Sequence record: OM339718.1
DNA length: 64,000 bases
Direction: 5' to 3' (one strand)
A program made the position numbers and the translations under genes. Position 1 is the first letter of the stretch, and each line of letters begins with the position of its first letter. Positions 1,610 to 47,962 of the stretch are shown in pieces. The notes beneath the pieces were generated by a model, which worked only from the letters and a program-made list of their open reading frames with translations, ran no database searches and was not told where the DNA came from.

Positions 1610-1690
1610 TAGGAAGCTCTACAATCAATTCTAAAAGTAATCCTATAACTTTGTATCGGTTTTGAATATAATTGATTGTAGAGCTTCCTA
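1610..1690. repeat. 21-bp perfect inverted repeat (39-nt spacer)
   Basis: TAGGAAGCTCTACAATCAATT 1610-1630 / AATTGATTGTAGAGCTTCCTA 1670-1690. Confidence 0.95.
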
Positions 1691-1726
1691 TGAGGTAGTA
1701 TCACTTGAAATCAAAATATAAAATCT

Positions 1727-1760
1727 CTATAAGTATTTATATAGAAGATCTATAATTAGA
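1727..1760 (+). repeat. 34-bp AT-rich core, identical copy at 43912-43945
   Basis: CTATAAGTATTTATATAGAAGATCTATAATTAGA in both places. Confidence 0.95.
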
Positions 1761-1816
1761 GAGCGAAGCGAACCGCCGAAGGCGTACTCACTACGTTCGT
1801 ATTTTAAGGAGTAAAA

Positions 1817-2197
1817 ATGTTAAATTGGTTCAAGAAAACTGATACACTAGATCTGGTTGTAGAGATCTCTTATTACGATTCCATGAATTGTCTGGTGTTA
1901 ATTGATACCCCAGAGATTCCTGTTACATTCACAAAAGGTTGTGACGTTAGGGAAACAATAAATTCCACAATCATCACGTTTGCAAAAAACGATAATAAGA
2001 TCCAAAGTGCATTTAAAGATATTCGTGTTCCATCATTTGTTCGTAGTGGTTGGTTGGACAATTATAGACAAATCCATGATGGAAATTTCGAAAAAGTAAA
2101 ATCAAATCGTAAATTTTGGAATCATACCATTATCGATGTATCCGGTGCAAAAACACGGTGGGGTAAAGATATTCAAAGGTCTATTAAGGGGAAATGA
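1817..2197 (+). CDS. hypothetical protein
   Basis: AAGGAG SD, ORF track. Confidence 0.7.
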   Translation: MLNWFKKTDTLDLVVEISYYDSMNCLVLIDTPEIPVTFTKGCDVRETINSTIITFAKNDNKIQSAFKDIRVPSFVRSGWLDNYRQIHDGNFEKVKSNRKFWNHTIIDVSGAKTRWGKDIQRSIKGK

Positions 2198-12180: not shown

Positions 12181-12393
12181 ATGAAAGTCCAGTTTAAATC
12201 AGAAGAAGCTATGACTGAGTTTAAAACGTTAGATCGCAACAACGAAGAACTAGTAAATGCATATGGTATGAGTCCCATCCCTATTGGATTTGTAGATGAA
12301 GAATGGTGGGATATCTTTAATGAGAAAGATCTGCATTTTTACACCATCAACATCTCCGACGAATCCCATTTTTTCGAAATTTTGGAAAAATAA
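12181..12393 (+). CDS. MKxxFK-family hypothetical protein
   Basis: MKVQFKSEEAMTEF. Confidence 0.7.
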   Translation: MKVQFKSEEAMTEFKTLDRNNEELVNAYGMSPIPIGFVDEEWWDIFNEKDLHFYTINISDESHFFEILEK

Positions 12394-12510
12394 TTCAAAA
12401 ACGCTTGCTCTCGGGTAAGCGTTTTGTTATTCTATTCTTGTTGAAACGAGAGATGAAAGAAGGACAAACTGGTACTTTCCTTCTTTCCAAAACAAACCGA
12501 GGATAAATTT

Positions 12511-12726
12511 ATGGATATCGAAACCACTTACTATGCTTTCGTTGACAAAGGTTATGCAAACCCACAGTCAAATCTGTTTGACCCAGTTAGTAAGATCCCG
12601 AACGTTGTGTACACACCACATACTAAACTTGACGGAACCTATTGCAAGTTTGAGGATGGTTCTGGTATACTCTATGTATACCGTGGTGGGGCGGATTACG
12701 ATTTTATCCCCAAAGTATCTATCTAA
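12511..12726 (+). CDS. hypothetical protein (paralog of 21977)
   Basis: Shared YY.FVDKGYANPQ.NLF.P. Confidence 0.7.
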   Translation: MDIETTYYAFVDKGYANPQSNLFDPVSKIPNVVYTPHTKLDGTYCKFEDGSGILYVYRGGADYDFIPKVSI

Positions 12727-12734
12727 GGAATGAC

Positions 12735-12860
12735 ATGACCAACTTTGAATTTGCTATGAAACGCGCTAAGTTCCAAATCACCAAGCACAAAGAGACTTTG
12801 ATCTGTGCTGGTATTGTTGGTGTTGTTCTTTTCGTTATCATCCCTATGTTGAACGGTTAA
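12735..12860 (+). CDS. small membrane protein (41 aa)
   Basis: AAGGA SD; hydrophobic C-terminal half. Confidence 0.55.
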   Translation: MTNFEFAMKRAKFQITKHKETLICAGIVGVVLFVIIPMLNG

Positions 12861-12869
12861 GGAGTTATT

Positions 12870-13256
12870 ATGCTGAACAAACGTTATACTGTAAAAAAAG
12901 ATTTTGAGGATTTCCACAAAGAATTTCCCGAACTGGTTTTGGGTTCTTCTTTCACGGTAACAGAGACGGACGGACCCGGTATCATATCCATCATCATGGA
13001 TAGTGGAACTGAATATAACATCGACTCATATCCTTGGTGTTGGTGCTTCTACACAGAAGATATGGTAAAAGAATATCTTGTCCCAGTTGAAAACCTCACA
13101 GACGAAGAAAAGAACGACTTGATAGTTGCCAACTTGAAGAAGAAAGAAAAGGAGATGGAAGAAAAGAAAGCTTTGTTGTTGGCAAATTGGGAGAAGGAAG
13201 AAAAGGAGTTGATTGAAGCTCTGGAAAACCATCGCAAAAATAAGCCGGGGGTTTGA
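12870..13256 (+). CDS. hypothetical protein (paralog of 20908) with coiled-coil tail
   Basis: Shared MLNK...EFP..V.G..FTV.ET...MD.GT.YNI...WCFYT. Confidence 0.75.
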   Translation: MLNKRYTVKKDFEDFHKEFPELVLGSSFTVTETDGPGIISIIMDSGTEYNIDSYPWCWCFYTEDMVKEYLVPVENLTDEEKNDLIVANLKKKEKEMEEKKALLLANWEKEEKELIEALENHRKNKPGV

Positions 13257-13257
13257 T

Positions 13258-13497
13258 ATGATTTCTTTGGTAGCATTATCTTGTTATGCTCCGATATACT
13301 TCATTGTCCAGCTAGGGGAAAAGATCAATCGTGATGTGATTCTATCTTATATTCTCATGGTCTTTACTATCGTTCTAGTAGTCTGCACCACCACGATTAC
13401 CCTGAAATATGGAACAAACCCGGTGGTATTGTTTTGGATTTGTCAAACGAACATCCTTACTTGTCTGATGGCTAAAATAATTTCAAAAAGTCTTTGA
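13258..13497 (+). CDS. membrane protein
   Basis: Three hydrophobic segments. Confidence 0.6.
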   Translation: MISLVALSCYAPIYFIVQLGEKINRDVILSYILMVFTIVLVVCTTTITLKYGTNPVVLFWICQTNILTCLMAKIISKSL

Positions 13498-13521
13498 CTC
13501 TATAGCTAGTTCTGGTAATAT
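13494..13521 (+). promoter_or_regulatory. sigma70-like early promoter, TGG-TAATAT class
   Basis: TTGACT-16bp-TAATAT; near copies at 16794 and 19827. Confidence 0.7.
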
Positions 13522-13551
13522 ACCTATGTACCCACTGATGAGGAAATTGAA

Positions 13552-13833
13552 ATGAAAATTCTTTTTACCGACCACCAAGCCGAACTAATCAACCGCATCA
13601 AGGCTTATCACGACAGTCGTATCGCTCTGACAATTTCCCCTGAGTCTCGCGCATTTCGCGATATGATGGAAGGACAAGAGTTGTGCAATTCTCAATGTAT
13701 TGCGCTCCGCAACTTCTTCGGTCGGGTAATCGATTATGATGCATGTGATAATGATATCGCTGCTGATGAAATGACCAAATACATGTACGGTGTTATGCGT
13801 GACCACGTTCGTAACTGGCTGTTTGAGGAATAA
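13552..13833 (+). CDS. hypothetical protein
   Basis: GAGG SD after promoter. Confidence 0.7.
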   Translation: MKILFTDHQAELINRIKAYHDSRIALTISPESRAFRDMMEGQELCNSQCIALRNFFGRVIDYDACDNDIAADEMTKYMYGVMRDHVRNWLFEE

Positions 13834-13836
13834 GAT

Positions 13837-14067
13837 ATGAAAAAGATTATGGAAGCTCTGGGATATGTTTGGTTCGAAACCCGTGGCGATTTTGTTGCTA
13901 CTATCGGTCCATGGGAAGAGAGTTATACCTATTATGAAGAAACTGATTTCCCTTGCTGGTTGAAACTAGTGGATTCTCTCGATAGCCCATACAACGCAAA
14001 AACAATTATGATTTACGACCGTGTTTCTGAATCTCTGGTGGGAGAAATTAAGTTTGAAAAATTGTGA
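13837..14067 (+). CDS. hypothetical protein
   Basis: GAGG SD. Confidence 0.65.
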   Translation: MKKIMEALGYVWFETRGDFVATIGPWEESYTYYEETDFPCWLKLVDSLDSPYNAKTIMIYDRVSESLVGEIKFEKL

Positions 14068-14245
14068 TTTGATTAAGATTCTCCAAGAACGAGATCCAAA
14101 TGCAAAAGTAGAATTTGTTTTCTTCGGTAATCATTTTGACGTTGAAGGGTTAGTACATTTTGACCCAACCGGTTATAACGCTATCGAGCTGTATGGTAAG
14201 GCGTTACATGAGATGGAAATTGTTGTTACTTTCAACCAAGGATAA
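14054..14245 (+). CDS. hypothetical protein (TTG start inferred)
   Basis: GGAG SD at 14041; MKNCDLIKILQERDPNAKV. Confidence 0.55.
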   Translation: MKNCDLIKILQERDPNAKVEFVFFGNHFDVEGLVHFDPTGYNAIELYGKALHEMEIVVTFNQG

Positions 14246-14531
14246 AATATGTTCTATGCACTGAAAAACAAATATACTGGTAAAGTTGCTATGGTAGAGG
14301 TGTGTGGTGAAGCTGTTTATTTGGTAGATGATGAAGCAATTGGAGACCATGCAGTTGCTTTTGTCTACACCGAAACCACCTCACAGAAAATTCAAGATAC
14401 GTTGGATGGTGTCAACGACAATCTGTTTGTCCAAATCGATCCAGAACAATACGATATCGTGGAAATTCAAATTTAGAAGATGATTTTGTAAAATGGGAAT
14501 TGTTGTTACTTTCAATCAAGGATAAAATATG
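14213..14531 (+). repeat. 39-bp direct repeat marking a tandem gene duplication
   Basis: 14213-14251 vs 14493-14531, 37/39 identical. Confidence 0.9.
14249..14476 (+). CDS. hypothetical protein (tandem paralog of 14529)
   Basis: YALK.K.TGK.A...VCG...YLVDD. Confidence 0.75.
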   Translation: MFYALKNKYTGKVAMVEVCGEAVYLVDDEAIGDHAVAFVYTETTSQKIQDTLDGVNDNLFVQIDPEQYDIVEIQI

Positions 14532-14750
14532 ATTCTCTATGCGTTAAAACATAAGAAGACTGGTAAGTTGGCTCAACTGGATGTGTGTGGTGATTGCACT
14601 TATTTGGTGGATGATACCGATACCGCTTTGTTTCCCTATACAGAATCCAACATCAACGATGTAAAGGATGCGCTAGCTAATAGTAATGATGACATATACA
14701 CATACATCAAACCAGACGATTATGAAATCGTTAAATTCGTTCTGAAATAA
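14529..14750 (+). CDS. hypothetical protein (tandem paralog of 14249)
   Basis: YALK.K.TGK.A...VCG...YLVDD. Confidence 0.75.
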   Translation: MILYALKHKKTGKLAQLDVCGDCTYLVDDTDTALFPYTESNINDVKDALANSNDDIYTYIKPDDYEIVKFVLK

Positions 14751-14763
14751 AAGGATATAAGCT

Positions 14764-15291
14764 ATGAAGTATTGGTGTTTTCGATTGTCTCATCCGGTTG
14801 ATATTGCTATCGCATGTGACTATGTAAACCAGAAATTCCCTGATCGTATTGGTAATGTTCCTGCCCAATGTTGGTCTTGGTTGAACAAAACATCTGAACA
14901 GCAGATTCATTATTCGGATCGTCATTCAAGCAATATGATTGTTTTCGACCCTGTTAACAAATGTTGGCTACTACAGAGTAATAGTTCATATGAAGTCAAT
15001 CGCCATATGAAATCCGTAGCAGGACACTATGCCAATATTAGTAATGTAGCTAATGGCTACTGCGATATCCCGTTTGATGACCTTTACGAAAACCATATGG
15101 ATAACGCACGTAAAGAGTGTACTATTCCGGACTCGACTCTTTCTACTCTGGTGCGTGTTGCAAATCTGGAACTGGATATGCATAATCAAGAAGTTCGAGC
15201 TTATCACAATCGCCAGTGTGAACTCCGTGCGGAACGAGACAGCAGCAAAATGAGAAACTGGAATGGAGATTTGTTGAAGATATACCGATAA
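14764..15291 (+). CDS. hypothetical protein
   Basis: AAGGA SD. Confidence 0.7.
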   Translation: MKYWCFRLSHPVDIAIACDYVNQKFPDRIGNVPAQCWSWLNKTSEQQIHYSDRHSSNMIVFDPVNKCWLLQSNSSYEVNRHMKSVAGHYANISNVANGYCDIPFDDLYENHMDNARKECTIPDSTLSTLVRVANLELDMHNQEVRAYHNRQCELRAERDSSKMRNWNGDLLKIYR

Positions 15292-15322
15292 ATTAGTTGT
15301 TTTGAAAACTGGTTGTGCTACT

Positions 15323-15366
15323 ATATCCATATCGAAACGAGAGACGGAAAGGGAAAAATCATGAAA
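15323..15366 (+). repeat. promoter-leader cassette, near-identical copy at 16429-16472
   Basis: ATATCCATATCGAAACGAGAGACGGAAAGG..AAATCATGAAA, 42/44 identical. Confidence 0.9.
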
Positions 15367-15762
15367 GCATTCACCAAAGGTCAGGTTGTTATTCAGGTTG
15401 CAAGCGTAGACGGTAAAGGCACCTTCTCTTGGTTCCGAGCTGTTGTGAAATCCTGTGGTAAGAAGCAAATGACCCTGTGTCATCCAGAGACTGGTGCAAT
15501 GCTCGGTAACCACTTCCGTCCTGAGCACGGTGTTGATATCGCCAATGGTCGGAACTATGGTGTTGTTGCTGATATGACTGACGAACAGGCCGACAAATAC
15601 ACCCTAACCATTGCTCAACTCTACGTCACTCGTGAGCTGTTTGATCTGGAAGACCAGCTTGATGCTGCTAAAGCTCGCAAGGCACCGGTTGCTTTTGTTG
15701 AGTTGATGGAAAAGAATGTTGAAGAGTTCAAGAAAAACGTTGCTAAAGTTCAAAGGGGTTAA
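15361..15762 (+). CDS. hypothetical protein
   Basis: ATG at end of leader cassette. Confidence 0.7.
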   Translation: MKAFTKGQVVIQVASVDGKGTFSWFRAVVKSCGKKQMTLCHPETGAMLGNHFRPEHGVDIANGRNYGVVADMTDEQADKYTLTIAQLYVTRELFDLEDQLDAAKARKAPVAFVELMEKNVEEFKKNVAKVQRG

Positions 15763-15764
15763 TC

Positions 15765-15902
15765 ATGAAAATCAAAGACGGTAACGACATCATCACTTTC
15801 ACTGGGGAATATGGGGTTTATGAATCTGGTGAACCCTGTATGTCAAGTTTGTCGGATATGATAGTTCGTGTTAATTGTGGTTCCGCTGAAATTATTGGTT
15901 GA
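15765..15902 (+). CDS. hypothetical protein (45 aa)
   Basis: AGGGG SD; fills gap. Confidence 0.5.
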   Translation: MKIKDGNDIITFTGEYGVYESGEPCMSSLSDMIVRVNCGSAEIIG

Positions 15903-15957
15903 CTCAGTGATCTGTTCTGGTAAGATATCCATATCGAAATTAGCCGAGGGAATTAAC

Positions 15958-16185
15958 ATGAACTTCTTTAATTATATTGTTGTGATGAAAACTGTTAACG
16001 GTATGGAAAGCTTTCTGGTCTCTGCTATGGATCCTTCTAAGGCCAAGAAAAAGGTTATGGATTACTTGGTTGACGAATGCATTCCGTTCAGTTGTTCCTA
16101 TCCGAGAAATGAAACCATGCGAGTTGCAGATTCACAAGTGGAAGAAATGAAAAATCGCTCTGACATCAAAACCCTTTATGTTTAA
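15958..16185 (+). CDS. hypothetical protein
   Basis: GAGGG SD after promoter 15899-15926. Confidence 0.65.
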   Translation: MNFFNYIVVMKTVNGMESFLVSAMDPSKAKKKVMDYLVDECIPFSCSYPRNETMRVADSQVEEMKNRSDIKTLYV

Positions 16186-16194
16186 GGATCTATT

Positions 16195-16413
16195 ATGAAA
16201 ATCAAATTCAAATCCGAAGCACATATGAACGAGTTCGCAAATATCAACCTTGGTTGGTCTTCCCATAATAAAGATCTGGTTCGTCGTCATGGTATGAACC
16301 CTTTCGAGGTTGAGGTTGATATTACCGAATCTTGGTGGGATACAGTAGATGGTGATTTCACTATTCATAAAGAAGGTGAAGGAAAATATTTTGAAATAGT
16401 TGTTGCATCGTAG
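16195..16413 (+). CDS. MKxxFK-family hypothetical protein
   Basis: MKIKFKSEAHMNEF; close paralog of 21148. Confidence 0.75.
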   Translation: MKIKFKSEAHMNEFANINLGWSSHNKDLVRRHGMNPFEVEVDITESWWDTVDGDFTIHKEGEGKYFEIVVAS

Positions 16414-16466
16414 TCCAGTTCTGGTATTATATCCATATCGAAACGAGAGACGGAAAGGAAGAAATC

Positions 16467-16790
16467 ATGAAACTCAGCAAAGCCCAAAACGAAGTAGTTG
16501 CTATTTGTGTTGCGGAAGTTGAGCGTCTTTGGAACCAGTATCAAGTTGATTTGGTTCGCTGGGAAAACACTCCCAAGGGTAAGACCAAAGAAGAGATGAC
16601 TTTCCGTCTGGGTGCTGTTAACCGTGCTACTGTTCGCGCTCTCATTAAGGCCGGTGTTCTGATTGTTGACCACAAGTTCAGTGTCAAAGAACCCACTTTG
16701 AAGAAATACAACTATGGTCGTGACCGTGTTTATGGTGACAACTATTACGAAGAAAATATTTACCGTCTGAGCAAAGAATTTGTCAAATAA
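16467..16790 (+). CDS. hypothetical protein
   Basis: ATG at end of leader cassette. Confidence 0.7.
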   Translation: MKLSKAQNEVVAICVAEVERLWNQYQVDLVRWENTPKGKTKEEMTFRLGAVNRATVRALIKAGVLIVDHKFSVKEPTLKKYNYGRDRVYGDNYYEENIYRLSKEFVK

Positions 16791-16850
16791 CGTTTGACTC
16801 GATAAATGGTTCTGGTAATATGTCTGTACACCAACTGAGAAGGAAATACC

Positions 16851-17090
16851 ATGAACACCAAACTCCGCAATCGCCTGAATAACATGCTTGGTAATCAAAC
16901 TCTGGTTTGTACTTCCACAATCGGAACCATTACCATGAAGGCCGCGCTTGATAATGGTGGTATGGACTTTGTTGTTGATGTGAGCATCACCACCGAAAAT
17001 GGTGTAGAGAATAAAGGCCGTATGTACACCAAACAAGCGCTGGAAACTTACGGTGATTCCATCTCTCATATCGTTGTTAAGAATTATTAA
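16851..17090 (+). CDS. hypothetical protein
   Basis: AAGGA SD after promoter 16794-16821. Confidence 0.7.
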   Translation: MNTKLRNRLNNMLGNQTLVCTSTIGTITMKAALDNGGMDFVVDVSITTENGVENKGRMYTKQALETYGDSISHIVVKNY

Positions 17091-17098
17091 GGGATATC

Positions 17099-17308
17099 AT
17101 GGTCGCATTTACCCGAGTAATATTTCTTTGTATTATCTATGGTGTTGGGTCTAGCCAATGTGGGGAATATCATTGGGTTGGTACACTGTCGGTAACTCGT
17201 CGCGGGCTTGTGATAAAATATTGTCAAGGTAACAAATGGCGTGTTATGCTGGTAACAGCTCGTGGCCTTTACAAAAACATTCAATCTGGGATATGGAGAG
17301 TATTATGA
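17099..17308 (+). CDS. hypothetical protein, hydrophobic N-terminus
   Basis: ORF track. Confidence 0.55.
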   Translation: MVAFTRVIFLCIIYGVGSSQCGEYHWVGTLSVTRRGLVIKYCQGNKWRVMLVTARGLYKNIQSGIWRVL

Positions 17309-17460
17309 AAAGTTTTATCGTTTCCTTCAAAATTCAAAATGCATTTGGTGATAAAGTCCTTACTGAATACGTTTGGGCATACACCCCGAAATGTGCAGTC
17401 GAGAAGATCCAAGAAAAATACGTTGGCGTTTATCACGCTAAAGCAAAACTTGCCATCTAA
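17305..17460 (+). CDS. hypothetical protein
   Basis: GGAG SD before ATG 17305. Confidence 0.55.
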   Translation: MKSFIVSFKIQNAFGDKVLTEYVWAYTPKCAVEKIQEKYVGVYHAKAKLAI

Positions 17461-17469
17461 GGGGATAGT

Positions 17470-17646
17470 ATGAAAAATAAAATTCTTGTAGAACTAGTTG
17501 CAAAACAAACCAGTGATCTGATAAAATCTAATGGTCATCGAATGGCACTAGTGGCTTTGGGTAAATGGATTGAAGCCACACCATATATCACTGATGAGGA
17601 AATTAAGTTCCTCATGAATTTGGTCAAAGTATATCAGGAGCAATAA
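17470..17646 (+). CDS. hypothetical protein (58 aa)
   Basis: AAGGGG SD; fills gap. Confidence 0.55.
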   Translation: MKNKILVELVAKQTSDLIKSNGHRMALVALGKWIEATPYITDEEIKFLMNLVKVYQEQ

Positions 17647-17648
17647 TC

Positions 17649-18071
17649 ATGGCTAAAGGTAAAGTAACTGCAAAATCTCTCCGCGCTGGTCAGACTGTAT
17701 ATCGTGTATGCGGCCCTACTGGTTCTATCACTAAGATTCTTATCACATCACGTCCGTTCGCTTACAAGAAAAAAGATTCTGTACTGAATGGTACTCTGTG
17801 GGTGAACTATCGAAAGTGGTTCAAAACCAGTAGTTACAAATTCGGTGTTGTTCGGGAAGTGAATGACTTCTTTAATGATGATTTCAGCCTCACTGACGCT
17901 GGTATTGATGGTAGTCATCCGGGTGGTACTAATCGCACCTTCTACACTTACAACGCTGCTAAACGCTGGTCTGAGTACGTTAAATCGCTCCCCAAGAAAC
18001 AGGAGTGGTGGGAAGATGATGACGATATGTGGAGCCCAACCGATTATGATGATGTAGACAACACTTTCTAA
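17649..18071 (+). CDS. hypothetical protein, basic body with acidic C-terminal tail
   Basis: Ends WWEDDDDMWSPTDYDDVDNTF. Confidence 0.7.
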   Translation: MAKGKVTAKSLRAGQTVYRVCGPTGSITKILITSRPFAYKKKDSVLNGTLWVNYRKWFKTSSYKFGVVREVNDFFNDDFSLTDAGIDGSHPGGTNRTFYTYNAAKRWSEYVKSLPKKQEWWEDDDDMWSPTDYDDVDNTF

Positions 18072-18080
18072 GGGGATAGT

Positions 18081-18266
18081 ATGATGGTTTTGATTGATAC
18101 AAAGAATGCCCAACTGTCGTTGAAATGGATGACGCCAGAAAAGATTGGTGAATTACACCACGACCGGTCGGCTATCATCGAGTTAATTTTATCTCTTGAT
18201 AGTAACCTAGTTCCATATGTGCAATTGAACTCTGATGAGTATAATTTTCTCAAAAACCACTTGTGA
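18081..18266 (+). CDS. hypothetical protein
   Basis: AAGGGG SD. Confidence 0.6.
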   Translation: MMVLIDTKNAQLSLKWMTPEKIGELHHDRSAIIELILSLDSNLVPYVQLNSDEYNFLKNHL

Positions 18267-18319
18267 TAGTAATTGATTTATGGGATACTTTCCTTGTTGG
18301 AAAACACGAGGGAAGTATC

Positions 18320-18475
18320 ATGAAAGATTTCAAAGTGACTGTTAAAGGCTCTACCGGTTCTATTTCTTATGATGTTTACAAGACTCATAAAGGGGCTTTG
18401 AACTTCGGTAAGAAAATTGCTAAAGAAGCTTTTTATGGTGAACAGTGTGAAATTATGGTAGAGGAAATTATATGA
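18320..18475 (+). CDS. hypothetical protein
   Basis: GAGGG SD before ATG 18320. Confidence 0.6.
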   Translation: MKDFKVTVKGSTGSISYDVYKTHKGALNFGKKIAKEAFYGEQCEIMVEEII

Positions 18476-18693
18476 TGGATTTTATTAATAGCCAACTTGG
18501 TTTCGTTCTCATCACCACTATGTTCCTGTGTGGTATCGTGTTCAACGGTGTTGCAACCTATAATGACACGCGGAAAGGTGGGATGTTGGATAAAGTTCTT
18601 TGCTATGTTCTTCATTTTCTTACGTGTGGTTTGTCAATAACCGGGTATGTGGAACTTCTGAAAATTATGGATTTCAGCAAGATTCTGGGTTGA
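18472..18693 (+). CDS. membrane protein
   Basis: Two hydrophobic segments. Confidence 0.65.
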   Translation: MMDFINSQLGFVLITTMFLCGIVFNGVATYNDTRKGGMLDKVLCYVLHFLTCGLSITGYVELLKIMDFSKILG

Positions 18694-18766
18694 AAATAAA
18701 ATGAAAAATGGCTTGCTTCGGTGAGTCATTTGTTTTACTATGTGTATATCGAAACGGGAGGTTCTT

Positions 18767-19030
18767 ATGGTAAACGAAATGATGAATGCAATCACTATCA
18801 AGCTGGAAGAAGCAAAATCCAAAAAGCGTCAAGGTCTGGTTTATCGCAACGCATATGCGGTACTGGAAAACGGCCCGGATAGTTCTGACTATGTTGTTTC
18901 GGTCCACGTAGAGTCTACCGATGAATATGATGGAAAAGCGCGTGATGAAGCCCAACGCCGAGCTGATGTGATGCAAACAGAGCTGGGTTATCTTGGTTAC
19001 GGTTATACTGTTGTTCGTGTTGAAGTCTAA
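18767..19030 (+). CDS. hypothetical protein
   Basis: GGAGG SD after promoter. Confidence 0.7.
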   Translation: MVNEMMNAITIKLEEAKSKKRQGLVYRNAYAVLENGPDSSDYVVSVHVESTDEYDGKARDEAQRRADVMQTELGYLGYGYTVVRVEV

Positions 19031-19040
19031 GGAGAATATT

Positions 19041-19334
19041 ATGAACGTTTCTTACTTGCGTGAAGCTTTCGAATCCGTTAAATGTTTGTCCAAGAAATTT
19101 GATGTTTCTGACTGGGATTATGTTGATAACATGAATACCCTCTCCAACATCTACATCGCTGTTCCTATGGGTGAGGATGAGATCCGGGGTTATATTGATT
19201 CCGCCATTCGTAATATCGATGATGCAAAAACTGTTTTTGACCGTGGTGATTCTTATGAGGATGATCTGATTGGTATCCACCTTGATATGGCTCTGGTAAA
19301 TCTCCGAGCTGCAATTTATTACGCTTCCAAGTAA
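19041..19334 (+). CDS. hypothetical protein (resembles 41777)
   Basis: AAGGAG SD; C-terminal I.+D+.+.NLRAA shared with 41777. Confidence 0.7.
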   Translation: MNVSYLREAFESVKCLSKKFDVSDWDYVDNMNTLSNIYIAVPMGEDEIRGYIDSAIRNIDDAKTVFDRGDSYEDDLIGIHLDMALVNLRAAIYYASK

Positions 19335-19343
19335 GGAATCAAT

Positions 19344-19826
19344 ATGAAACTGAAATTCAAATCACCTATTATCCGCTCCAAATTCATTTCTCGTTTTGGA
19401 TTGACTGAATGGGGTAAGAAAGTTATCGATGCCATTGAGAATGGTGCTAATTGGCAGAAGGAATTGAAATATGATGGTTATTACACACGGGATTACTCGT
19501 TTGGTGCTGACTATCTGACCATTATTGAAAGTGTTCATTATTTTGAAGTTGGTGAATCTGATGGAAAAGCTTGGTTGATTGCTAATGAATATGGAGCTGT
19601 TACAACCACAGACGAGAAGGTTGCAGAACACTATTCCATCACCAACAAAACCCCGATGGTGGAAGTTCCATTTACTCGTATTGATGGTGAGCTTTATGTG
19701 TCCATCAGCGAGGTCAAGATGGATGAATCGGTAAAATCTCAAATCGATAAGCGGATCAAGAAACAGGAAGTTGCTAATAAAGCTGGTTTGTCAGTACAAG
19801 AAATGGAAAATCTTTTTCGGAATTGA
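19344..19826 (+). CDS. MKxxFK-family hypothetical protein with extra C-terminal domain
   Basis: MKLKFKSPIIRSKF. Confidence 0.65.
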   Translation: MKLKFKSPIIRSKFISRFGLTEWGKKVIDAIENGANWQKELKYDGYYTRDYSFGADYLTIIESVHYFEVGESDGKAWLIANEYGAVTTTDEKVAEHYSITNKTPMVEVPFTRIDGELYVSISEVKMDESVKSQIDKRIKKQEVANKAGLSVQEMENLFRN

Positions 19827-19890
19827 TTGACTCCATTTGGTGATCTGGTAATATACACATATACCCACTGAGGAAGAAAAGGAAATTGCC

Positions 19891-20151
19891 ATGAACTACG
19901 TCGCTTCCCTTGCCAAGAAAGTTATCAACGTTGCAGAGAACAATATCACTGATGAAGTGTATGATGCAGCTCAAACCGTTTGTGGTGTCGATTATGACTG
20001 GGCTTGCGAAATGATTTATCTCGGTGATGTGGAAGAGTGTATCGAAGTTATCCGGGCTTATATGGAGTTCCTGAATTGCTTCCCTGCTCAATACTGGATT
20101 AGCGATCTGAAAGATGAGATGGAAGAAATCAAAAATCTTTTGAAAAACTGA
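19891..20151 (+). CDS. hypothetical protein
   Basis: AAGGA SD after promoter 19827-19854. Confidence 0.7.
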   Translation: MNYVASLAKKVINVAENNITDEVYDAAQTVCGVDYDWACEMIYLGDVEECIEVIRAYMEFLNCFPAQYWISDLKDEMEEIKNLLKN

Positions 20152-20222
20152 TTGACTTAGAAATCATGTTTTGAGATACTAATCCCGTAGACAGAAACCC
20201 TCTCTTGAAAAAGGAAATCATC

Positions 20223-20441
20223 ATGACTGCACAAATCTTCTTCGCCACTCGTTCCGCTGCTCGTGTTGCTGGTTTTGGTAAAATGACTGACAATGGTACT
20301 CAGGCCACTAATCGCTGGGCTCGTACTGTCGATGTGAACTCTACTGGAAACAAAACCCTGTCTGTTGGTCGTGGTGTTCGCAAGAACGGTCACAAGGCCG
20401 TTACCATCATCACCAAGAAAGCAAAAACTCTGGTTCATTAA
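20223..20441 (+). CDS. small basic hypothetical protein
   Basis: AAGGA SD after promoter 20152-20180. Confidence 0.7.
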   Translation: MTAQIFFATRSAARVAGFGKMTDNGTQATNRWARTVDVNSTGNKTLSVGRGVRKNGHKAVTIITKKAKTLVH

Positions 20442-20450
20442 GGAGCTATT

Positions 20451-20693
20451 ATGAAAATCCATTTTAAAGATACCGACGCTCAATACGAATTCATGTGCAA
20501 GATCGATGCAAACGCGGCAATTGCAGACTATATGGGTATGGATACCCATGACGCCATTTCGTATGAAGAGTGTGGTAAGACCATCATTGCTCTGGTAGAC
20601 GTTAACGGCGACCCAATCACTGTTGGTGAATTCGACCAGTGGGAAGCACAGGTACATCAAGGTGAACAACAGTTCTTTATCATTGAGGAATAA
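20451..20693 (+). CDS. MKxxFK-family hypothetical protein
   Basis: MKIHFKDTDAQYEF...A.A.YMGMDTH.A shared with 21367. Confidence 0.75.
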   Translation: MKIHFKDTDAQYEFMCKIDANAAIADYMGMDTHDAISYEECGKTIIALVDVNGDPITVGEFDQWEAQVHQGEQQFFIIEE

Positions 20694-20697
20694 TTTA

Positions 20698-20874
20698 GTG
20701 TCAAAGACCAATCACATTCCGAGCATAAAAAGCGTCTGGGACCAAGGCCGTCATCCAGCAAACTCACGAATCATTGGCCTTGAATCATTAGCACGAAGTG
20801 GTTCAACTAGTGAGGTAAGGCGCAAGGCTATTGTAGCACTAAAGAGAGATTTCGGAATTGAATTCAAGGGGTGA
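20698..20874 (+). CDS. hypothetical protein (GTG start inferred)
   Basis: GAGG SD; fills gap. Confidence 0.45.
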   Translation: MSKTNHIPSIKSVWDQGRHPANSRIIGLESLARSGSTSEVRRKAIVALKRDFGIEFKG

Positions 20875-20907
20875 ATACTGTTCGTCAACTATTAGAGGAA
20901 TAAAGAT

Positions 20908-21147
20908 ATGCTGAACAAGAAATTCAAAATCATCGAAGAAGTAAGCCCTATCATGAAATCAGAGTTTCCGTTGATGGTAGTTGGTAACTATTTCACAGTA
21001 AAAGAAACCCTCAAATCTGGATATACCGAAGGGATTACGGTGATTGAAATGGATGATGGTACTATCTACAATATCCAAGATAGCTCAATGTCTTGGTGCT
21101 TCTACACCATTGGTATGATCCCGTGGCGTCTGGTGGAGATTAAGTAA
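20908..21147 (+). CDS. hypothetical protein (paralog of 12870)
   Basis: Sequence similarity to 12870. Confidence 0.75.
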   Translation: MLNKKFKIIEEVSPIMKSEFPLMVVGNYFTVKETLKSGYTEGITVIEMDDGTIYNIQDSSMSWCFYTIGMIPWRLVEIK

Positions 21148-21363
21148 ATGAAGATTCGTTTTAAAGATGAAAAAGCCATGGAAGAGTTTTCTAAACGGGA
21201 TCCGTCTTTCCACCGCCACAACCACAACATGGTTAAGAATTATGGTATGAAAACATTCAAAGTAGAGATTGACGATACCGGTGATTTCTGGGATACTATT
21301 GATGGAGATTTCACTATCCAAATTGAAGACGAAAGCCATTACTTCACTATTGTTGAGGAATAA
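21148..21363 (+). CDS. MKxxFK-family hypothetical protein
   Basis: MKIRFKDEKAMEEF. Confidence 0.75.
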   Translation: MKIRFKDEKAMEEFSKRDPSFHRHNHNMVKNYGMKTFKVEIDDTGDFWDTIDGDFTIQIEDESHYFTIVEE

Positions 21364-21366
21364 ATT

Positions 21367-21615
21367 ATGAAGATTCGTTTTAAAGATGAACAAGCCCATC
21401 AGGACTTCTCCAATTGTCGTGCTAACGTTGCTATTGCAAACTATATGGGAATGGATACACACGAAGCATACAATTATTGTAGCGGGGATATTGGGCTGAT
21501 AGATGATAATAATTGTGGTATCACTATTCCAGATCCATATATCTCTGGGTTTGAAGGGTGGAATGCGGTTATCCATAAGGGTGAGCGTCGTTACTTTGTT
21601 ATTGAAGGGGAATAA
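21367..21615 (+). CDS. MKxxFK-family hypothetical protein
   Basis: MKIRFKDEQAHQDF. Confidence 0.75.
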   Translation: MKIRFKDEQAHQDFSNCRANVAIANYMGMDTHEAYNYCSGDIGLIDDNNCGITIPDPYISGFEGWNAVIHKGERRYFVIEGE

Positions 21616-21618
21616 GAT

Positions 21619-21915
21619 ATGAAGATCCGTTTCAAGTCAGAACAACATCTACGCGATTTTAAAGCTGCATCGGTAGAAAATTTGGAAATCGCGGATTTTA
21701 TGAGAATGCACCCAGTTGAAGTAGTTAAGATCCATGGTCATTACTACATCGAAACCGACATTCTTGATTGTACTCTTATCCTCGAATCCGAACACGATTT
21801 CTTTGATTGGATTGAAGATGATCCCAAAACCCTTTTCGATATCATGTTAGAAAAGAAGGCTGAATACGACAAGGCTTTCAACGACTATATCCAATCGGTT
21901 AAAGAAAACAGTTGA
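21619..21915 (+). CDS. MKxxFK-family protein with KKAEY coiled-coil tail
   Basis: MKIRFKSEQHLRDF ... KKAEYDKA. Confidence 0.75.
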   Translation: MKIRFKSEQHLRDFKAASVENLEIADFMRMHPVEVVKIHGHYYIETDILDCTLILESEHDFFDWIEDDPKTLFDIMLEKKAEYDKAFNDYIQSVKENS

Positions 21916-21976
21916 CCGTTGAGACGGTTATCTGTATATTGGGACTTGTCAAAAATCTTAGGTAAGGGGAATTTAA

Positions 21977-22252
21977 ATGGATACTACATCTTTCATCGAA
22001 CCACTTCTGGGTGAGACTCAAACCATTAAGTCTATCTATTACTCATTCGTTGATAAAGGTTACGCTAATCCACAACATAACCTATTTGTCCCTATTGAGA
22101 ATCTTTCCTCTACCGGACACAAAGTAAAAATGAAAGTTGCAAATACCAGCTCAAATCTAGCCTTTACTTACGAGGACGATTCAGGTATTCTCAACGTGTA
22201 CATTGATGGGAAAGTAGATTTCTCTCCCATCCAAAATAGTAAAGGAGAATAA
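21977..22252 (+). CDS. hypothetical protein (paralog of 12511)
   Basis: YYSFVDKGYANPQHNLF. Confidence 0.7.
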   Translation: MDTTSFIEPLLGETQTIKSIYYSFVDKGYANPQHNLFVPIENLSSTGHKVKMKVANTSSNLAFTYEDDSGILNVYIDGKVDFSPIQNSKGE

Positions 22253-22255
22253 ATC

Positions 22256-22627
22256 ATGACAGATATTATGCGTATTCGTTTCCTCAGTGAAGAGGACAAA
22301 GAACATTTTGTATCCCGCAGTGTACACGCAAACACCCACATCGCAAACCATATGGGTATGGGCTGGAATCGTGTATCCTTCAATGGTCGTCGTTGGTCTC
22401 TGGTGGATGAGAACAATGAGGATGTGGTTATTGATGGTATTGATGTAGCCCCATCCATTCACCCATCTGAATACCAATTTTTCGAATGGGATATTCTCCC
22501 GGTAGAAAAGAAAAAATCTATCAAAGAACTCTGGGATATCGCACAACAGAAGAAAGCAGAGTATGATGATGCTATGACTGAATACAACAAAGCAGTGATG
22601 GAGAAGCTTGATGAAAGTGAGATTTAA
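22256..22627 (+). CDS. MKxxFK-family protein with KKAEY coiled-coil tail
   Basis: MRIRFLSEEDKEHF ... KKAEYDDA. Confidence 0.75.
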   Translation: MTDIMRIRFLSEEDKEHFVSRSVHANTHIANHMGMGWNRVSFNGRRWSLVDENNEDVVIDGIDVAPSIHPSEYQFFEWDILPVEKKKSIKELWDIAQQKKAEYDDAMTEYNKAVMEKLDESEI

Positions 22628-22868
22628 AAATATCGAATCCAAATATGCGTTTACCACTGGTGGACGAGCTAATATGTCCATCGCAGAATACATGGGTAAC
22701 GATTTCCATGAAGCTCAATCGTGCTTTGATGGAAGCATCGAACTCGTGGATAGTAAAGGGAATAATATTACTCTCAATACGTATGGTAAAGCTGTTCCGG
22801 ATAATGGATGGAATGCTTGCTTCTTTGAAGATGAAACTCAATATTTGGAGATGCATTATGAAGATTAA
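22611..22868 (+). CDS. MKxxFK-family hypothetical protein
   Basis: MKVRFKNIESKYAF. Confidence 0.75.
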   Translation: MKVRFKNIESKYAFTTGGRANMSIAEYMGNDFHEAQSCFDGSIELVDSKGNNITLNTYGKAVPDNGWNACFFEDETQYLEMHYED

Positions 22869-23208
22869 GTTTAAAGACGAACAGTCCCGTCATGAGTTCC
22901 GCCAGATTGAGCGGTTTAACAAAGTTATCGAAAACCATATTGGTAATGAACCACATGAAGTAATCTTAGATGGTGATGATTATTTCCTCTCTAAGGATGG
23001 TGAACTATTGAGGGTTGATTACTGTTATGCTTTTATTCGTAAAAGTGAAATGAAGTATTTTGATGTTATTGAAGACACTACCATGTCCATTGAGGGTGTA
23101 GAAGCTCTATGGAATGATGTACAAGAAAAGAAAGCTGAATACGAACGTAGTTTGGCGCTTTACTATCGAGAAGCATCCAAAATATACAATCGAATCATCA
23201 AACAATAG
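22858..23208 (+). CDS. MKxxFK-family protein with KKAEY coiled-coil tail
   Basis: GGAG SD; MKIKFKDEQSRHEF ... KKAEYERS. Confidence 0.75.
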   Translation: MKIKFKDEQSRHEFRQIERFNKVIENHIGNEPHEVILDGDDYFLSKDGELLRVDYCYAFIRKSEMKYFDVIEDTTMSIEGVEALWNDVQEKKAEYERSLALYYREASKIYNRIIKQ

Positions 23209-25547: not shown

Positions 25548-25618
25548 AGTAGTTGCATCGGTCTTTGGTTATGGTATTATATCTACATCGAAACGAGATA
25601 CCTAACTGAGGAAAGATT

Positions 25619-37355: not shown

Positions 37356-37633
37356 TGAAACATACATACCAAGTAGTAACAACAAAAACAATTGATATTA
37401 CAGTTTCCCAATTTGTCAAGAAATATCTGAAAGAAATTCGTGTGTGGGAAGATGAATATGATTTCTTTGTTGATGACCCAACGAGTCGCGGTGATGGGTT
37501 TTTAATGCGCAAATTTTCTCTCCCAAAAAGTCTTTTTTCTATGGATATCAGACACTTTAGTTGGGAAAAGGATAAGAACAAAGCTATGGTTTCTCATATC
37601 ATTGATATTCTTGAAAAGAATTATAAGGGGTAA
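37355..37633 (+). CDS. hypothetical protein
   Basis: TGATG overlap. Confidence 0.6.
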   Translation: MKHTYQVVTTKTIDITVSQFVKKYLKEIRVWEDEYDFFVDDPTSRGDGFLMRKFSLPKSLFSMDIRHFSWEKDKNKAMVSHIIDILEKNYKG

Positions 37634-43156: not shown

Positions 43157-43414
43157 ATGATTATTAGTCTGAATATGCATGAGTTTTATGAACTTTACCC
43201 GTGTTATCAAGAGTGGGTTTGTAATGAATCCCCTTCCCAATATTCTATCAATGCGGTTTATAATCGTATGATGCATAAGAAATCTCTAAACGTTATGGAA
43301 GCTAAGGAAGTTATGGCGTTTATTGCTTGGGTTGAAAACAACTCTTGCAAAGAAGATCTAGAAATCCTCAAATCAACTATCCAATATATGAAAGGTGTAT
43401 TAAATGCTGCTTGA
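43157..43414 (+). CDS. hypothetical protein
   Basis: GAGG SD. Confidence 0.65.
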   Translation: MIISLNMHEFYELYPCYQEWVCNESPSQYSINAVYNRMMHKKSLNVMEAKEVMAFIAWVENNSCKEDLEILKSTIQYMKGVLNAA

Positions 43415-43883
43415 ACAAATTAAGAAAGACCAAATTAAAGCCCGTAAATCAGAAGACCGTTCTACCCATCACGGGAAAGTTCGTATCAACGCTCTAACAA
43501 CCCTAATTGGTGAAGCAAGTCCTTCCGGTAATCAGGTAGTAACTGACGAACAAGTCCAATCGGTTATTCGCAAATTCGTTAAAAACATTGACGAAGCAGT
43601 TACCGAGATCCGCAAAAGGGTTGTATCCGTATCAAACGATATGACTAATCAAGAAGTGATGGATATTCTTAAAACTGATATCAAATTCACGGACTTGATG
43701 ATCGAACGTGAACTGCTGAGTTCCTATCTTCCGAAGGTGTTTGGTGAAGAACATATCAAAGAGGTACTTAGTCAGCTCGTTGGTGGTTCTAACATCGGTC
43801 AAGTCATGGGCGCTTGTAAGAAAGCAGCTTCTGCCAAAGGTCTTTTGTTTGATGGTGCCCTTGTCAAAAAGGTACTGGGCTAG
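43404..43883 (+). CDS. YqeY/GatB-domain protein
   Basis: LLEQIKKDQIKARK...LTTLIGE...E.ELL.SYLP...IGQVMG...DG.LV. Confidence 0.8.
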   Translation: MLLEQIKKDQIKARKSEDRSTHHGKVRINALTTLIGEASPSGNQVVTDEQVQSVIRKFVKNIDEAVTEIRKRVVSVSNDMTNQEVMDILKTDIKFTDLMIERELLSSYLPKVFGEEHIKEVLSQLVGGSNIGQVMGACKKAASAKGLLFDGALVKKVLG

Positions 43884-43911
43884 TATCATATGAAATCAAA
43901 TTATAGATTTC

Positions 43912-43945
43912 CTATAAGTATTTATATAGAAGATCTATAATTAGA
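43912..43945 (+). repeat. 34-bp AT-rich core, identical to 1727-1760
   Basis: Exact match; upstream TGAAATCAAA also shared. Confidence 0.95.
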
Positions 43946-43995
43946 ACGAGTGAAACGAGTACGGCGTAGCCGGTTCGCTAAAGCTCACCAATCTT

Positions 43996-44061
43996 TCTAG
44001 AATCAATTCCTCGTTATCTCATACAATGTTTATTGTATTCTCCATAGGAATTGATTCTAGA
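43996..44061. repeat. 16-bp perfect inverted repeat with inner 7-bp hairpin
   Basis: TCTAGAATCAATTCCT 43996-44011 / AGGAATTGATTCTAGA 44046-44061. Confidence 0.95.
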
Positions 44062-44082: not shown

Positions 44083-44331
44083 ATGGTTTCTATAGAGAGT
44101 TTCGTAAACATTAAGAAAAGTGAAGGCTATAAGGAAGTAATACCGTTTGTGTCTGGTTATACAAGCCTTCAATTAAAGGTTAAAGACTGGGTATATTCCT
44201 TTCATGTGAATCACGATACCAAAGACGTCGAATATCGTGTTGTTACCCCATATGAAACCAAAGGGTTCATCATTTATAATTTGGATCATGTACTGGTTCG
44301 AGACGGAAAATTTTTTCGGGTGGGTGAATGA
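44083..44331 (+). CDS. hypothetical protein
   Basis: GAGG SD before ATG 44083. Confidence 0.65.
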   Translation: MVSIESFVNIKKSEGYKEVIPFVSGYTSLQLKVKDWVYSFHVNHDTKDVEYRVVTPYETKGFIIYNLDHVLVRDGKFFRVGE

Positions 44332-47453: not shown

Positions 47454-47693
47454 ATGATTGATATGACATTATTTGGTGGTGGGGTAGTGTCTGGTCTTAC
47501 AAAAGATGGAAAACCTACCCATATCAACCTTAAAGACCATTCAATGGAAACGGTCAAACTGTCTATCCAAAAAGATGTGTTTGGGTATGAAGTAAGTATT
47601 ATTATTTTTCCATGTGGTAGTACTGCAAGATTTATTGGTGATGTTCGAAATCGAACTGATGTGATCCTAAGAGATAAAGATTATAAAATATGA
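47454..47693 (+). CDS. hypothetical protein
   Basis: Overlap junction with asiA. Confidence 0.55.
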   Translation: MIDMTLFGGGVVSGLTKDGKPTHINLKDHSMETVKLSIQKDVFGYEVSIIIFPCGSTARFIGDVRNRTDVILRDKDYKI

Positions 47694-47962
47694 AAATTAC
47701 AAAAGTTGAATTGATGAAAGATATTGTAGCTACCGCATCTATCTTGGCAAAGTATGGCTGTGATGATATTCTAGATACTCAATCTGGGTTTGTAGATTTT
47801 CTAAATGAACTGGGGTTTACTACCGTGCGAGGTAAACCATTAACGATTTTTAATTTCAGAGTTATGGTTAGTAGTCTAACCCCATATCAGAAAAAAGAGA
47901 TTATAAAAGAATTTGATGCTGGTAGAATTGACCATTTGATTAACTGTATGGTTGACGAATAA
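47690..47962 (+). CDS. asiA: anti-sigma70 factor AsiA
   Basis: 90 aa; +++I+A.ASIL.K+...DI++...F+.FLNE+G...G+.L...FR..+S.LT...KK.+I.EF pattern of T4 AsiA. Confidence 0.88.
   Translation: MKITKVELMKDIVATASILAKYGCDDILDTQSGFVDFLNELGFTTVRGKPLTIFNFRVMVSSLTPYQKKEIIKEFDAGRIDHLINCMVDE

Follow-up and report, generated by a model that had tools for sequence, protein, structure and literature searches.

Two composite non-coding elements in a 64,000-nucleotide stretch of phage DNA, which we refer to in its full length as the window, raise the question of what a promoter-like, AT-rich sequence joined to a set of small GC-rich hairpins does in a T4-like genome, and whether the two copies have anything to do with the small genes around them. 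The window is 100% identical to record positions 124001-188000 of Aeromonas phage P19 (OM339718.1), a T4-like phage (Ceceduovirus, Emmerichvirinae, Straboviridae) with a genome of 228,236 bp. Transcription is nearly all on the + strand from ~38.5 kb to 182 kb of this record, with small genes of unknown function between ~68 kb and 168 kb, i.e., starting well upstream of the window.

A family of six intergenic elements

A first-pass annotation of the window, made from the sequence alone, had described the two elements as twins, a duplicated pair that brackets a 42-kb small-gene region. Our whole-genome scan showed instead that the core of the element is present in six copies (n = 6), at record positions 12745(-), 37311(+), 78261(-), 125727(+), 167912(+), and 198729(+). 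Given six copies genome-wide, with the pair in the window the divergent ones, we reject the view that the elements bracket the small-gene region, which itself extends beyond the start of the window. We class the two window elements as members of a family of six composite elements, each ~120 bp long, and number their sites s4 and s5 (Table 1). Four of the six P19 copies have ~120 bp in common at 93-96% identity, with the window copies being the most divergent two, and the 34-mer found in both window copies is kept in five of the six, two of those with one mismatch.

We compared the sites across three genomes, i.e., P19, phage 65 (Ishigurovirus), and most of ZPAH1. All six intergenic sites are syntenic and occupied in all three, and between P19 and phage 65 they are collinear in both order and orientation. 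At s4, a DNA comparison of the region showed that phage 65 matches P19 only at the element and at the start of the downstream gene. Half of the sites are found among core or late genes (gp24/inh, gp35/nrdA, and gp54/gp26). Given this location, a total of six copies, and positions fixed across genera, the earlier suggestion that the elements are recombination ends of the hyperplastic region is not supported. The search for the 34-mer in the full genome and in relatives, which returned the six P19 copies, also confirmed its conservation in relatives: by BLAST against GenBank the element is present in 21 records, all of them Emmerichvirinae Aeromonas phages, at 4-9 places per record. It is annotated in none of these 21 records, and the P19 genome paper makes no mention of it. 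A pattern scan of IMG/VR for wider relatives recovered only phages 65, CC2, and AS-zj, a looser scan for the AT-rich pattern gave only chance matches among the matches listed, and a pattern scan of metagenomes identified one short contig, whose element is identical to that of phage 65 s3 over the stretch compared.

The sites are regularly spaced, with gaps of 25-47 kb in P19 (CV 0.205), which is more even than random placement (P ~0.001); the corresponding CV in phage 65 is 0.225. A co-oriented open reading frame (ORF) comes after four of the six sites, s1 and s2 each have a separate sigma-70-type promoter downstream, and s3 and s6 are oriented against their flanking genes in P19, phage 65, and ZPAH1. 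No motif part of the AT-rich core occurs elsewhere in the P19 genome beyond the six sites. We regard as secure the descriptive result that this is a previously unreported element family, with six copies that are syntenic and evenly spaced, each made up of an unwinding-prone, promoter-like dyad and an invertible mini-hairpin module.

The ORF just downstream of s2 encodes 39 amino acids with a hydrophobic C-terminus (record positions 37462-37581, +), is unannotated in P19, and is conserved with 65p047 and ZPAH1_orf00235, with which it has an EW.F motif in common. It has its own promoter, GTTTAC-N18-TACTAT, and its end overlaps the 3′ end of a convergent gene for a SegE-like homing endonuclease. 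This neighbor was considered as a HUH/Rep-type nuclease encoded beside a site; however, it is a GIY-YIG enzyme, and it was not found at the other sites.

Table 1. Sites of the element family and features of the two window copies (positions are those of the window)
Feature	Position	Strand	Description
Site s1			Near gp24/inh; P19, phage 65, ZPAH1
Site s2			After gp35 tail-fiber gene, before nrd block (gp35/nrdA); P19, phage 65, ZPAH1
Site s3			Between alc and vs.1; P19, phage 65, ZPAH1
Site s4			Window copy 1, small-gene block; P19, phage 65, ZPAH1
Site s5			Window copy 2, small-gene block, upstream of ndd and gp52; P19, phage 65, ZPAH1
Site s6			Between gp54 and gp26; P19, phage 65, ZPAH1
Long inverted repeat upstream of copy 1 (s4)	1610-1690	.	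21-bp perfect arms, 1610-1630 and 1670-1690; 39-nt spacer; fold z -8.3
AT-rich dyad core, copy 1 (s4)	1696-1760	+	~21% GC; iteron-like TCT(N)CTATA motifs and palindrome CTATA-N8-TATAG
Sigma-70 -10 hexamer TATAAT, copy 1	1751-1756	+	Perfect; no -35, no TG extension
GC-rich module, copy 1, direct	1759-1799	+	GAGAG, GCGAAGC (1763-1769), CGAAC, CGCC-GAA-GGCG (1774-1784), CTCAC, GTTCG
P19_0215, first gene after copy 1	1817-2197	+	Unknown function, PHROG 16660; Shine-Dalgarno 12 nt past module
AT-rich dyad core, copy 2 (s5)	43881-43945	+	TATAAT at 43936-43941
GC-rich module, copy 2, inverted relative to core	43944-43988	-	Hairpin CGGC-GTA-GCCG at 43962-43972
Inverted repeat downstream of copy 2 (s5)	43996-44061	.	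16-bp arms, 43996-44011 and 44046-44061; fold z -7.1
P19_0336, first gene after copy 2	44083-44331	+	Followed by ndd and gp52 topoisomerase subunit

The AT-rich core and the invertible hairpin module

The core is ~65 bp long at 21% GC and forms an imperfect dyad that contains the palindrome and three to four of the TCT(N)CTATA-like motifs in mixed orientation. Several observations of the first-pass annotation were confirmed at this level: TGAAATCAAA is present in both window copies, and the 34-mers at 1727-1760 and 43912-43945 are identical, where zero chance matches are expected. The full stretch common to the two window copies is 70 bp at 87% identity (1691-1760 vs 43876-43945). In every copy the -10 hexamer is TATAAT, TACAGT, or TATAGT, all of which fit TAnnnT. 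For the TATAAT of copy 1, the hexamer 16-18 bp upstream matches the -35 consensus TTGACA at only two of six positions, and a two-hexamer scan made no call. Ranked among the least stable 60-bp duplex regions of the 228-kb genome, the six cores take places 1, 2, 3, 4, 8, and 13, with copy 2 the least stable of all and copy 1 the second. As the copies have one sequence in common, these ranks do not count as six independent values, and promoters are in general AT-rich and unstable.

The dyad evolves in concert, in that ~12 concerted differences separate the phage 65 type from the P19 type across all sites, and phage 65 and avDM6 have a dyad version that differs from that of P19 and is uniform across their own sites. 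This pattern indicates gene conversion, a binding protein with which the dyad co-evolves, or the two together. The core of ZPAH1 s2 is fully symmetric. At phage 65 s6, between gp54 and gp26 (segment 2150-2350), we observed two convergent cores around a different center of ~100 bp, which contains the GC triloop hairpins CGGGC-TTT-GCCCG and CGCC-AAA-GGCG and in which the usual module is missing.

The GC-rich module that adjoins the core is 40-45 nt long at ~60% GC, and runs in the order GTGAG, a GNA mini-hairpin (hairpin 1), CGAAC, a GC hairpin of 3-5 bp with a 3-4-nt loop (hairpin 2), CTCAC, and GTTCG. The GNA-triloop mini-hairpins reported in both window copies are indeed present. Hairpin 1 occurs as GCGAAGC, GTGAAAC, GCGTAGC, or TCGTAGA, and most loops of hairpin 2 are not GNA. 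The mini-hairpin of the GCGNAGC type (GCGNAGC / GCGNNAGC, i.e., a two-pair stem closing a GNA loop) is found as GCGAAGC in P19 and CC2 and as GCGTAGC in ZPAH1. GTGAAAC and TCGTAGA, the phage 65 variants, keep both the pairing and the GNA loop, and they do not appear as stable mini-hairpin variants in the part of the review PMC13037366 available to us. Among nine distinct copies in direct orientation, hairpin 1 pairs as UA in five rows and as CG in four, with no row unpaired, and two pairs of hairpin 2 have changed on both sides. The covariation score of the two hairpins was reached in 0 of 500 shuffles. In total, only ~13 distinct module sequences, from closely related phages, were available.

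Two pairs of long-range complementary 5-mers in the module never covary, and their mismatches favor different strands; we therefore considered and set aside a pseudoknot, which a "permuted" order of segments had brought up, as the long-range helices lack covariation and the permuted order is simply the module inverted, and so adds nothing toward a pseudoknot. This comparison supports only the two small hairpins as predicted structure within the module. Wobble pairs gave a contradictory answer as to which strand is structured, with the T-G cases indicating the GNA strand and the CGAAC/GCTCG cases of phage 65 the other, and the assignment was dropped. Nearest-neighbor fold energies of the module are unremarkable as RNA and as DNA on both strands (z -0.1 to -2.0), and its 5′ half is 65-76% purine on the RNA-like strand, at most a hint that a transcript from the element may form a lasting RNA-DNA hybrid. 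A search of the window against Rfam 15 returned only two tRNAs at the gathering score, and relaxed searches with s2 and s4 gave only generic hairpin matches far below threshold.

What the first-pass annotation had called a related GC-rich segment in copy 2 is related, as stated there, and proves to be the same module in inverted orientation: it aligns to the reverse-complemented canonical module with a score of 42.5, vs 24 in direct orientation. Similarly, the module at ZPAH1 s1 is the exact reverse complement of ZPAH1's own direct module, and that at ZPAH1 s5 aligns, like window copy 2, to the inverted canonical module. From these alignments, we class the module as able to flip its orientation relative to the core. 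That inversion is tolerated argues for a role at the level of DNA over one as a sequence-specific RNA.

The longer inverted repeats described at each window copy are real, and the arms of both contain CTA(C/G)AATCAATTC (13-mer), as had been reported. The repeat at s4 lies outside the six-copy unit, and that of copy 2 lies inside the 5′ leader of P19_0336. ZPAH1 s4 has an inverted repeat of ~27 bp with the same arms as P19, and phage 65 s4 has one of ~13 bp with different arms, with the spacer motif CTATAACTTTGTAT in common with P19. Downstream of s5, a comparable repeat with AATCAATT is present in ZPAH1 and a weak one in phage 65; AATCAATT is found in the arms of the accessory repeats of both s4 and s5 in P19 and ZPAH1. 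As RNA, these perfect accessory stems of 16-27 bp would suit as substrates of RNase III-type enzymes.

Transcription context and comparison with known systems

P19 and phage 65 both encode AsiA (tblastn, E ~1e-13), with asiA at 47690-47962 of the window. A tblastn search with T4 MotA found no homolog in either genome (E above 2), and a Pfam domain search for MotA between gp52 and asiA came back empty. With AsiA present and MotA undetectable, activator-type initiation that is independent of a -35 becomes plausible. Ordinary early promoters in the window are of strong -35/TGn-10 types, and P19 late genes (gp19, gp20, gp22, gp23, gp24, gp34, wac, gp13, gp15, gp36, and gp26) are preceded by (C)CTAAATA, unlike T4's TATAAATA. 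As judged from these motifs, we place the element in neither the early-promoter nor the late-promoter class of P19. We also considered, and rejected, a late promoter on the reverse strand: the P19 core contains TATAAATA, but the core of phage 65 does not, and P19 late genes use CTAAATA. Only 20 occurrences of TATAAATA are present in the whole P19 genome, six of which are inside the elements, on the reverse strand.

At least five origins, with no common motif, lie in the 169 kb of phage T4, and two of these, oriF and oriG, are each ~100 bp and consist of a MotA-dependent promoter and an AT-rich unwinding element located downstream of the promoter (PMC3016281). The P19 elements resemble these R-loop origins, oriF (ori uvsY) and oriG (ori 34), in their size of ~100 bp, in combining a sigma-70 -10 without use of a -35 with an easily unwound AT-rich element, in being present several times per genome at a similar density, and in that some may double as gene promoters. 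In addition, three of the six have the genes that mark T4 oriE, oriF, and oriG within 5-8 kb, which is weak evidence. There are also differences. The six elements are near-identical, whereas T4 origins have no sequence motif in common; they lack a MotA box (TGCTT-type), with the palindrome CTATA-N8-TATAG there instead, in genomes with no detectable MotA gene; and their AT-rich part covers the -10 and the sequence before it, while what follows is GC-rich. The invertible GC hairpin module has no counterpart in T4. T4 oriE is comparable in a different respect, as its iterons are also short repeated motifs at an origin candidate, syntenic in relatives, although here the motifs number three to four, are TCT(N)CTATA-like and in mixed orientation, and are repeated at six loci.

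The hairpins recall another set of replication signals. According to a review (PMC13037366), d(GCGAAGC) melts at 76.5 C and the RNA counterpart of a related 8-mer, r(GCGAAAGC), at only 39 C, and GNA mini-hairpins are located at the priming origins of G4 and St-1 and, as CCGAAGG, in ssiA of RSF1010. The earlier statement that d(GCGAAGC)-type hairpins have been reported at phage origins is correct. The module has mini-hairpins of the GCGNAGC and CCGAAGG types in common with these complementary-strand origins and ssiA, with a literal CCGAAGG at window positions 1776-1782, and the role proposed is also the same, i.e., a landmark for primase that is free of single-strand-binding protein. The G4, St-1, and ssiA signals, however, function on the single-stranded DNA of a phage or plasmid, where the primase is that of the host or the plasmid, whereas the hairpins described here are in a double-stranded T4-like genome, beside a promoter-like dyad.

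The third comparison is with the PeSL and PmSL cassettes of T4-type phages (Arbiol 2010; Comeau 2014), which are also repeated intergenic motifs of a promoter and a stem-loop, and between whose copies recombination is likewise possible. In a PeSL, a terminator stem-loop precedes a complete sigma-70 promoter (-35/N17/-10), and PeSLs are numerous and concentrated in hyperplastic regions (PMC4122927). The P19 element has no -35, and its hairpins are downstream of the promoter; its six copies are fixed and syntenic, and half are located among core genes, whereas PeSLs are numerous and loosely conserved. When we looked for a terminator-like stem-loop upstream, only s4 had an upstream inverted repeat, without a T-run, and the canonical copies had none of their own. 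We therefore rejected membership in the PeSL class, as the element lacks the full promoter, the upstream terminator stem-loop, and the many copies in hyperplastic regions beside variable ORFs.

Candidate replication origins and alternative explanations

The reading that we favor, tentatively and at less than even confidence, is that the six elements are candidate replication origins, priming sites, or entry sites for a primosome, opened by a transcript or by a protein, of the same kind as T4 oriF and oriG. The grounds for it are the number of copies, their spacing, and an orientation that does not follow that of the genes, together with a core duplex of extreme instability, a -10 that is conserved, hairpins that are stable as DNA and weak as RNA, and a module whose inversion is tolerated. 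The corresponding suggestion of the first-pass annotation, replication origins or protein-loading sites, thereby gains circumstantial support from six even, syntenic copies, from the easiest-melting DNA of the genome, and from a conserved -10 and covarying GNA mini-hairpins. Counted against it are the missing MotA box, the lack of any common motif among T4 origins and the downstream position of their unwinding element, the instability of promoters in general, the unremarkable fold energies of the module, and the plain location of four of the six copies ahead of a co-oriented ORF.

As a mechanism, we propose that host RNA polymerase, modified by AsiA and probably aided by a putative phage protein that binds the dyad, would open or transcribe the AT-rich region. 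Once the strands separate, the adjacent GNA-type mini-hairpins would fold on one strand and keep the region open and free of single-strand-binding protein, and either the transcript or a phage primase could then prime DNA synthesis. Four of the six copies may additionally act as promoters for the next gene, as T4 oriF does for uvsY. In its most specific form, in which the elements would be the replication origins of the Emmerichvirinae, with an unwinding dyad that contains a promoter, is bound by a protein, and is coupled to an invertible module of mini-hairpins marking the start and the direction of priming, the proposal is a possible one that we hold still more cautiously. GC skew was also examined as an origin marker, and was uninformative, as it tracks only the coding strand.

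The main competitor, which we consider somewhat unlikely, is that the elements are a class of activator-dependent phage promoters with a hairpin leader and have no replication role. A phage protein bound to the dyad would recruit AsiA-modified RNA polymerase to a TATAAT without a -35, and the 5′ hairpins would stabilize the mRNA or pause the polymerase. The perfect and conserved -10, AsiA without MotA, and the co-oriented ORFs after four of six copies (including the conserved, unannotated 39-aa ORF after s2) are all as expected of such promoters, and a purely structural 5′ hairpin would both covary and withstand inversion of the module. A temporal promoter class, however, would number in tens, and any part of the motif is found at six sites only; moreover, s3 and s6 are directed against the neighboring genes and have no ORF downstream, an arrangement conserved across genera, s1 and s2 have their own sigma-70-type promoters after them, and a 2-bp GNA hairpin is weak as RNA. 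Promoters alone also leave the even spacing unexplained, which would be accounted for if the elements were bound by a phage protein with a DNA-architectural, topoisomerase, clamp-loading, or nicking activity that gives the genome a regular organization without initiating replication. The dyad and iteron symmetry of the core, its concerted evolution, and an orientation independent of the flanking genes would fit this as well; we nevertheless think it improbable, since it has no need of a conserved -10 or of hairpin covariation and no candidate protein was found.

Two further explanations are less probable again. The element could be a PeSL-like mobile regulatory cassette, or a recombination end that shuffles the hyperplastic region, and it is true that it is a repeated intergenic motif of promoter plus hairpin, that its concerted evolution implies exchange between copies, and that two GenBank records break at it. 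In AS-sw (MF498775.1, a partial record; segment 2501-2568) the upstream flank of s1 is joined to the downstream flank of s4 exactly inside the common core, with a normal s1 also kept, and in AP1 (MT713136.1; segment 2486-2613), a patchwork record, homology breaks at the same core. These junctions are either real recombinants between copies or mis-joins induced by the repeat, and given that one record is partial and the other a patchwork, both are possibly assembly artifacts. With six positions fixed across genera, P19 and phage 65 collinear, three sites outside hyperplastic regions, and the features that define PeSLs absent, we judge this explanation highly improbable. We give the lowest probability of all to the elements being six genes, each transcribed from a promoter of its own, for one small structured RNA such as a decoy or a regulator. 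A conserved, structured segment of 40-45 nt does come after a promoter-like core, with T-runs after the module in some copies, but the inverted module at s5 and at ZPAH1 s1 would give the complementary RNA, no consistent terminator or Rfam family match was found, and the fold z-scores are weak.

To our knowledge, the origins of T4-like phages have been experimentally mapped only in T4 itself, and since T4 origins have no common motif, origins have not been predictable in the hundreds of T4-like phages that have been sequenced. A short consensus at six conserved, evenly spaced sites would provide directly testable origin candidates, and would, if these are true origins, give the first T4-like phage whose multiple origins have one consensus in common. 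The element may also serve as a handle for finding the initiator protein that would co-evolve with the dyad, and as a natural case of DNA mini-hairpins that may act in a double-stranded phage genome. If the elements are only promoters, they would still define a MotA-independent, AsiA-era promoter class. Of practical note, homology breaks at the repeats, possibly through mis-joining, in two GenBank assemblies of phages studied for aquaculture biocontrol. A further record, that of AS-szw, begins inside the inverted repeat of s4.

Our examination of the window also identified features of the genes near these sites. The gene after P19_0215 (2197-2673) encodes a CYTH domain (E 5e-5), and the gene that ends at copy 2 (43404-43883) encodes a YqeY-like protein that matches a PHROG annotated as tRNA amidotransferase. 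At 12181-22904 and 20508-22701, small adjacent genes have their first ~45 nt in common (ATGAA.AT..G.TTTAAA...), together with an internal 34-nt block, which indicates that the small-gene region holds putative families of tandem paralogues; a 54-bp tandem duplication is located at 13104-13211 in the same region. In addition, a different intergenic repeat is present in at least nine copies between 11565 and 42751 (for example, at 15300-15350, 16406-16456, and 25556-25606), and consists of an early promoter with a -35 and a TGn-extended -10, followed by a conserved leader that ends in ATCGAAACGAGAGACGG and a ribosome-binding site. Some of these repeats follow a stem-loop and are, in this respect, PeSL-like.
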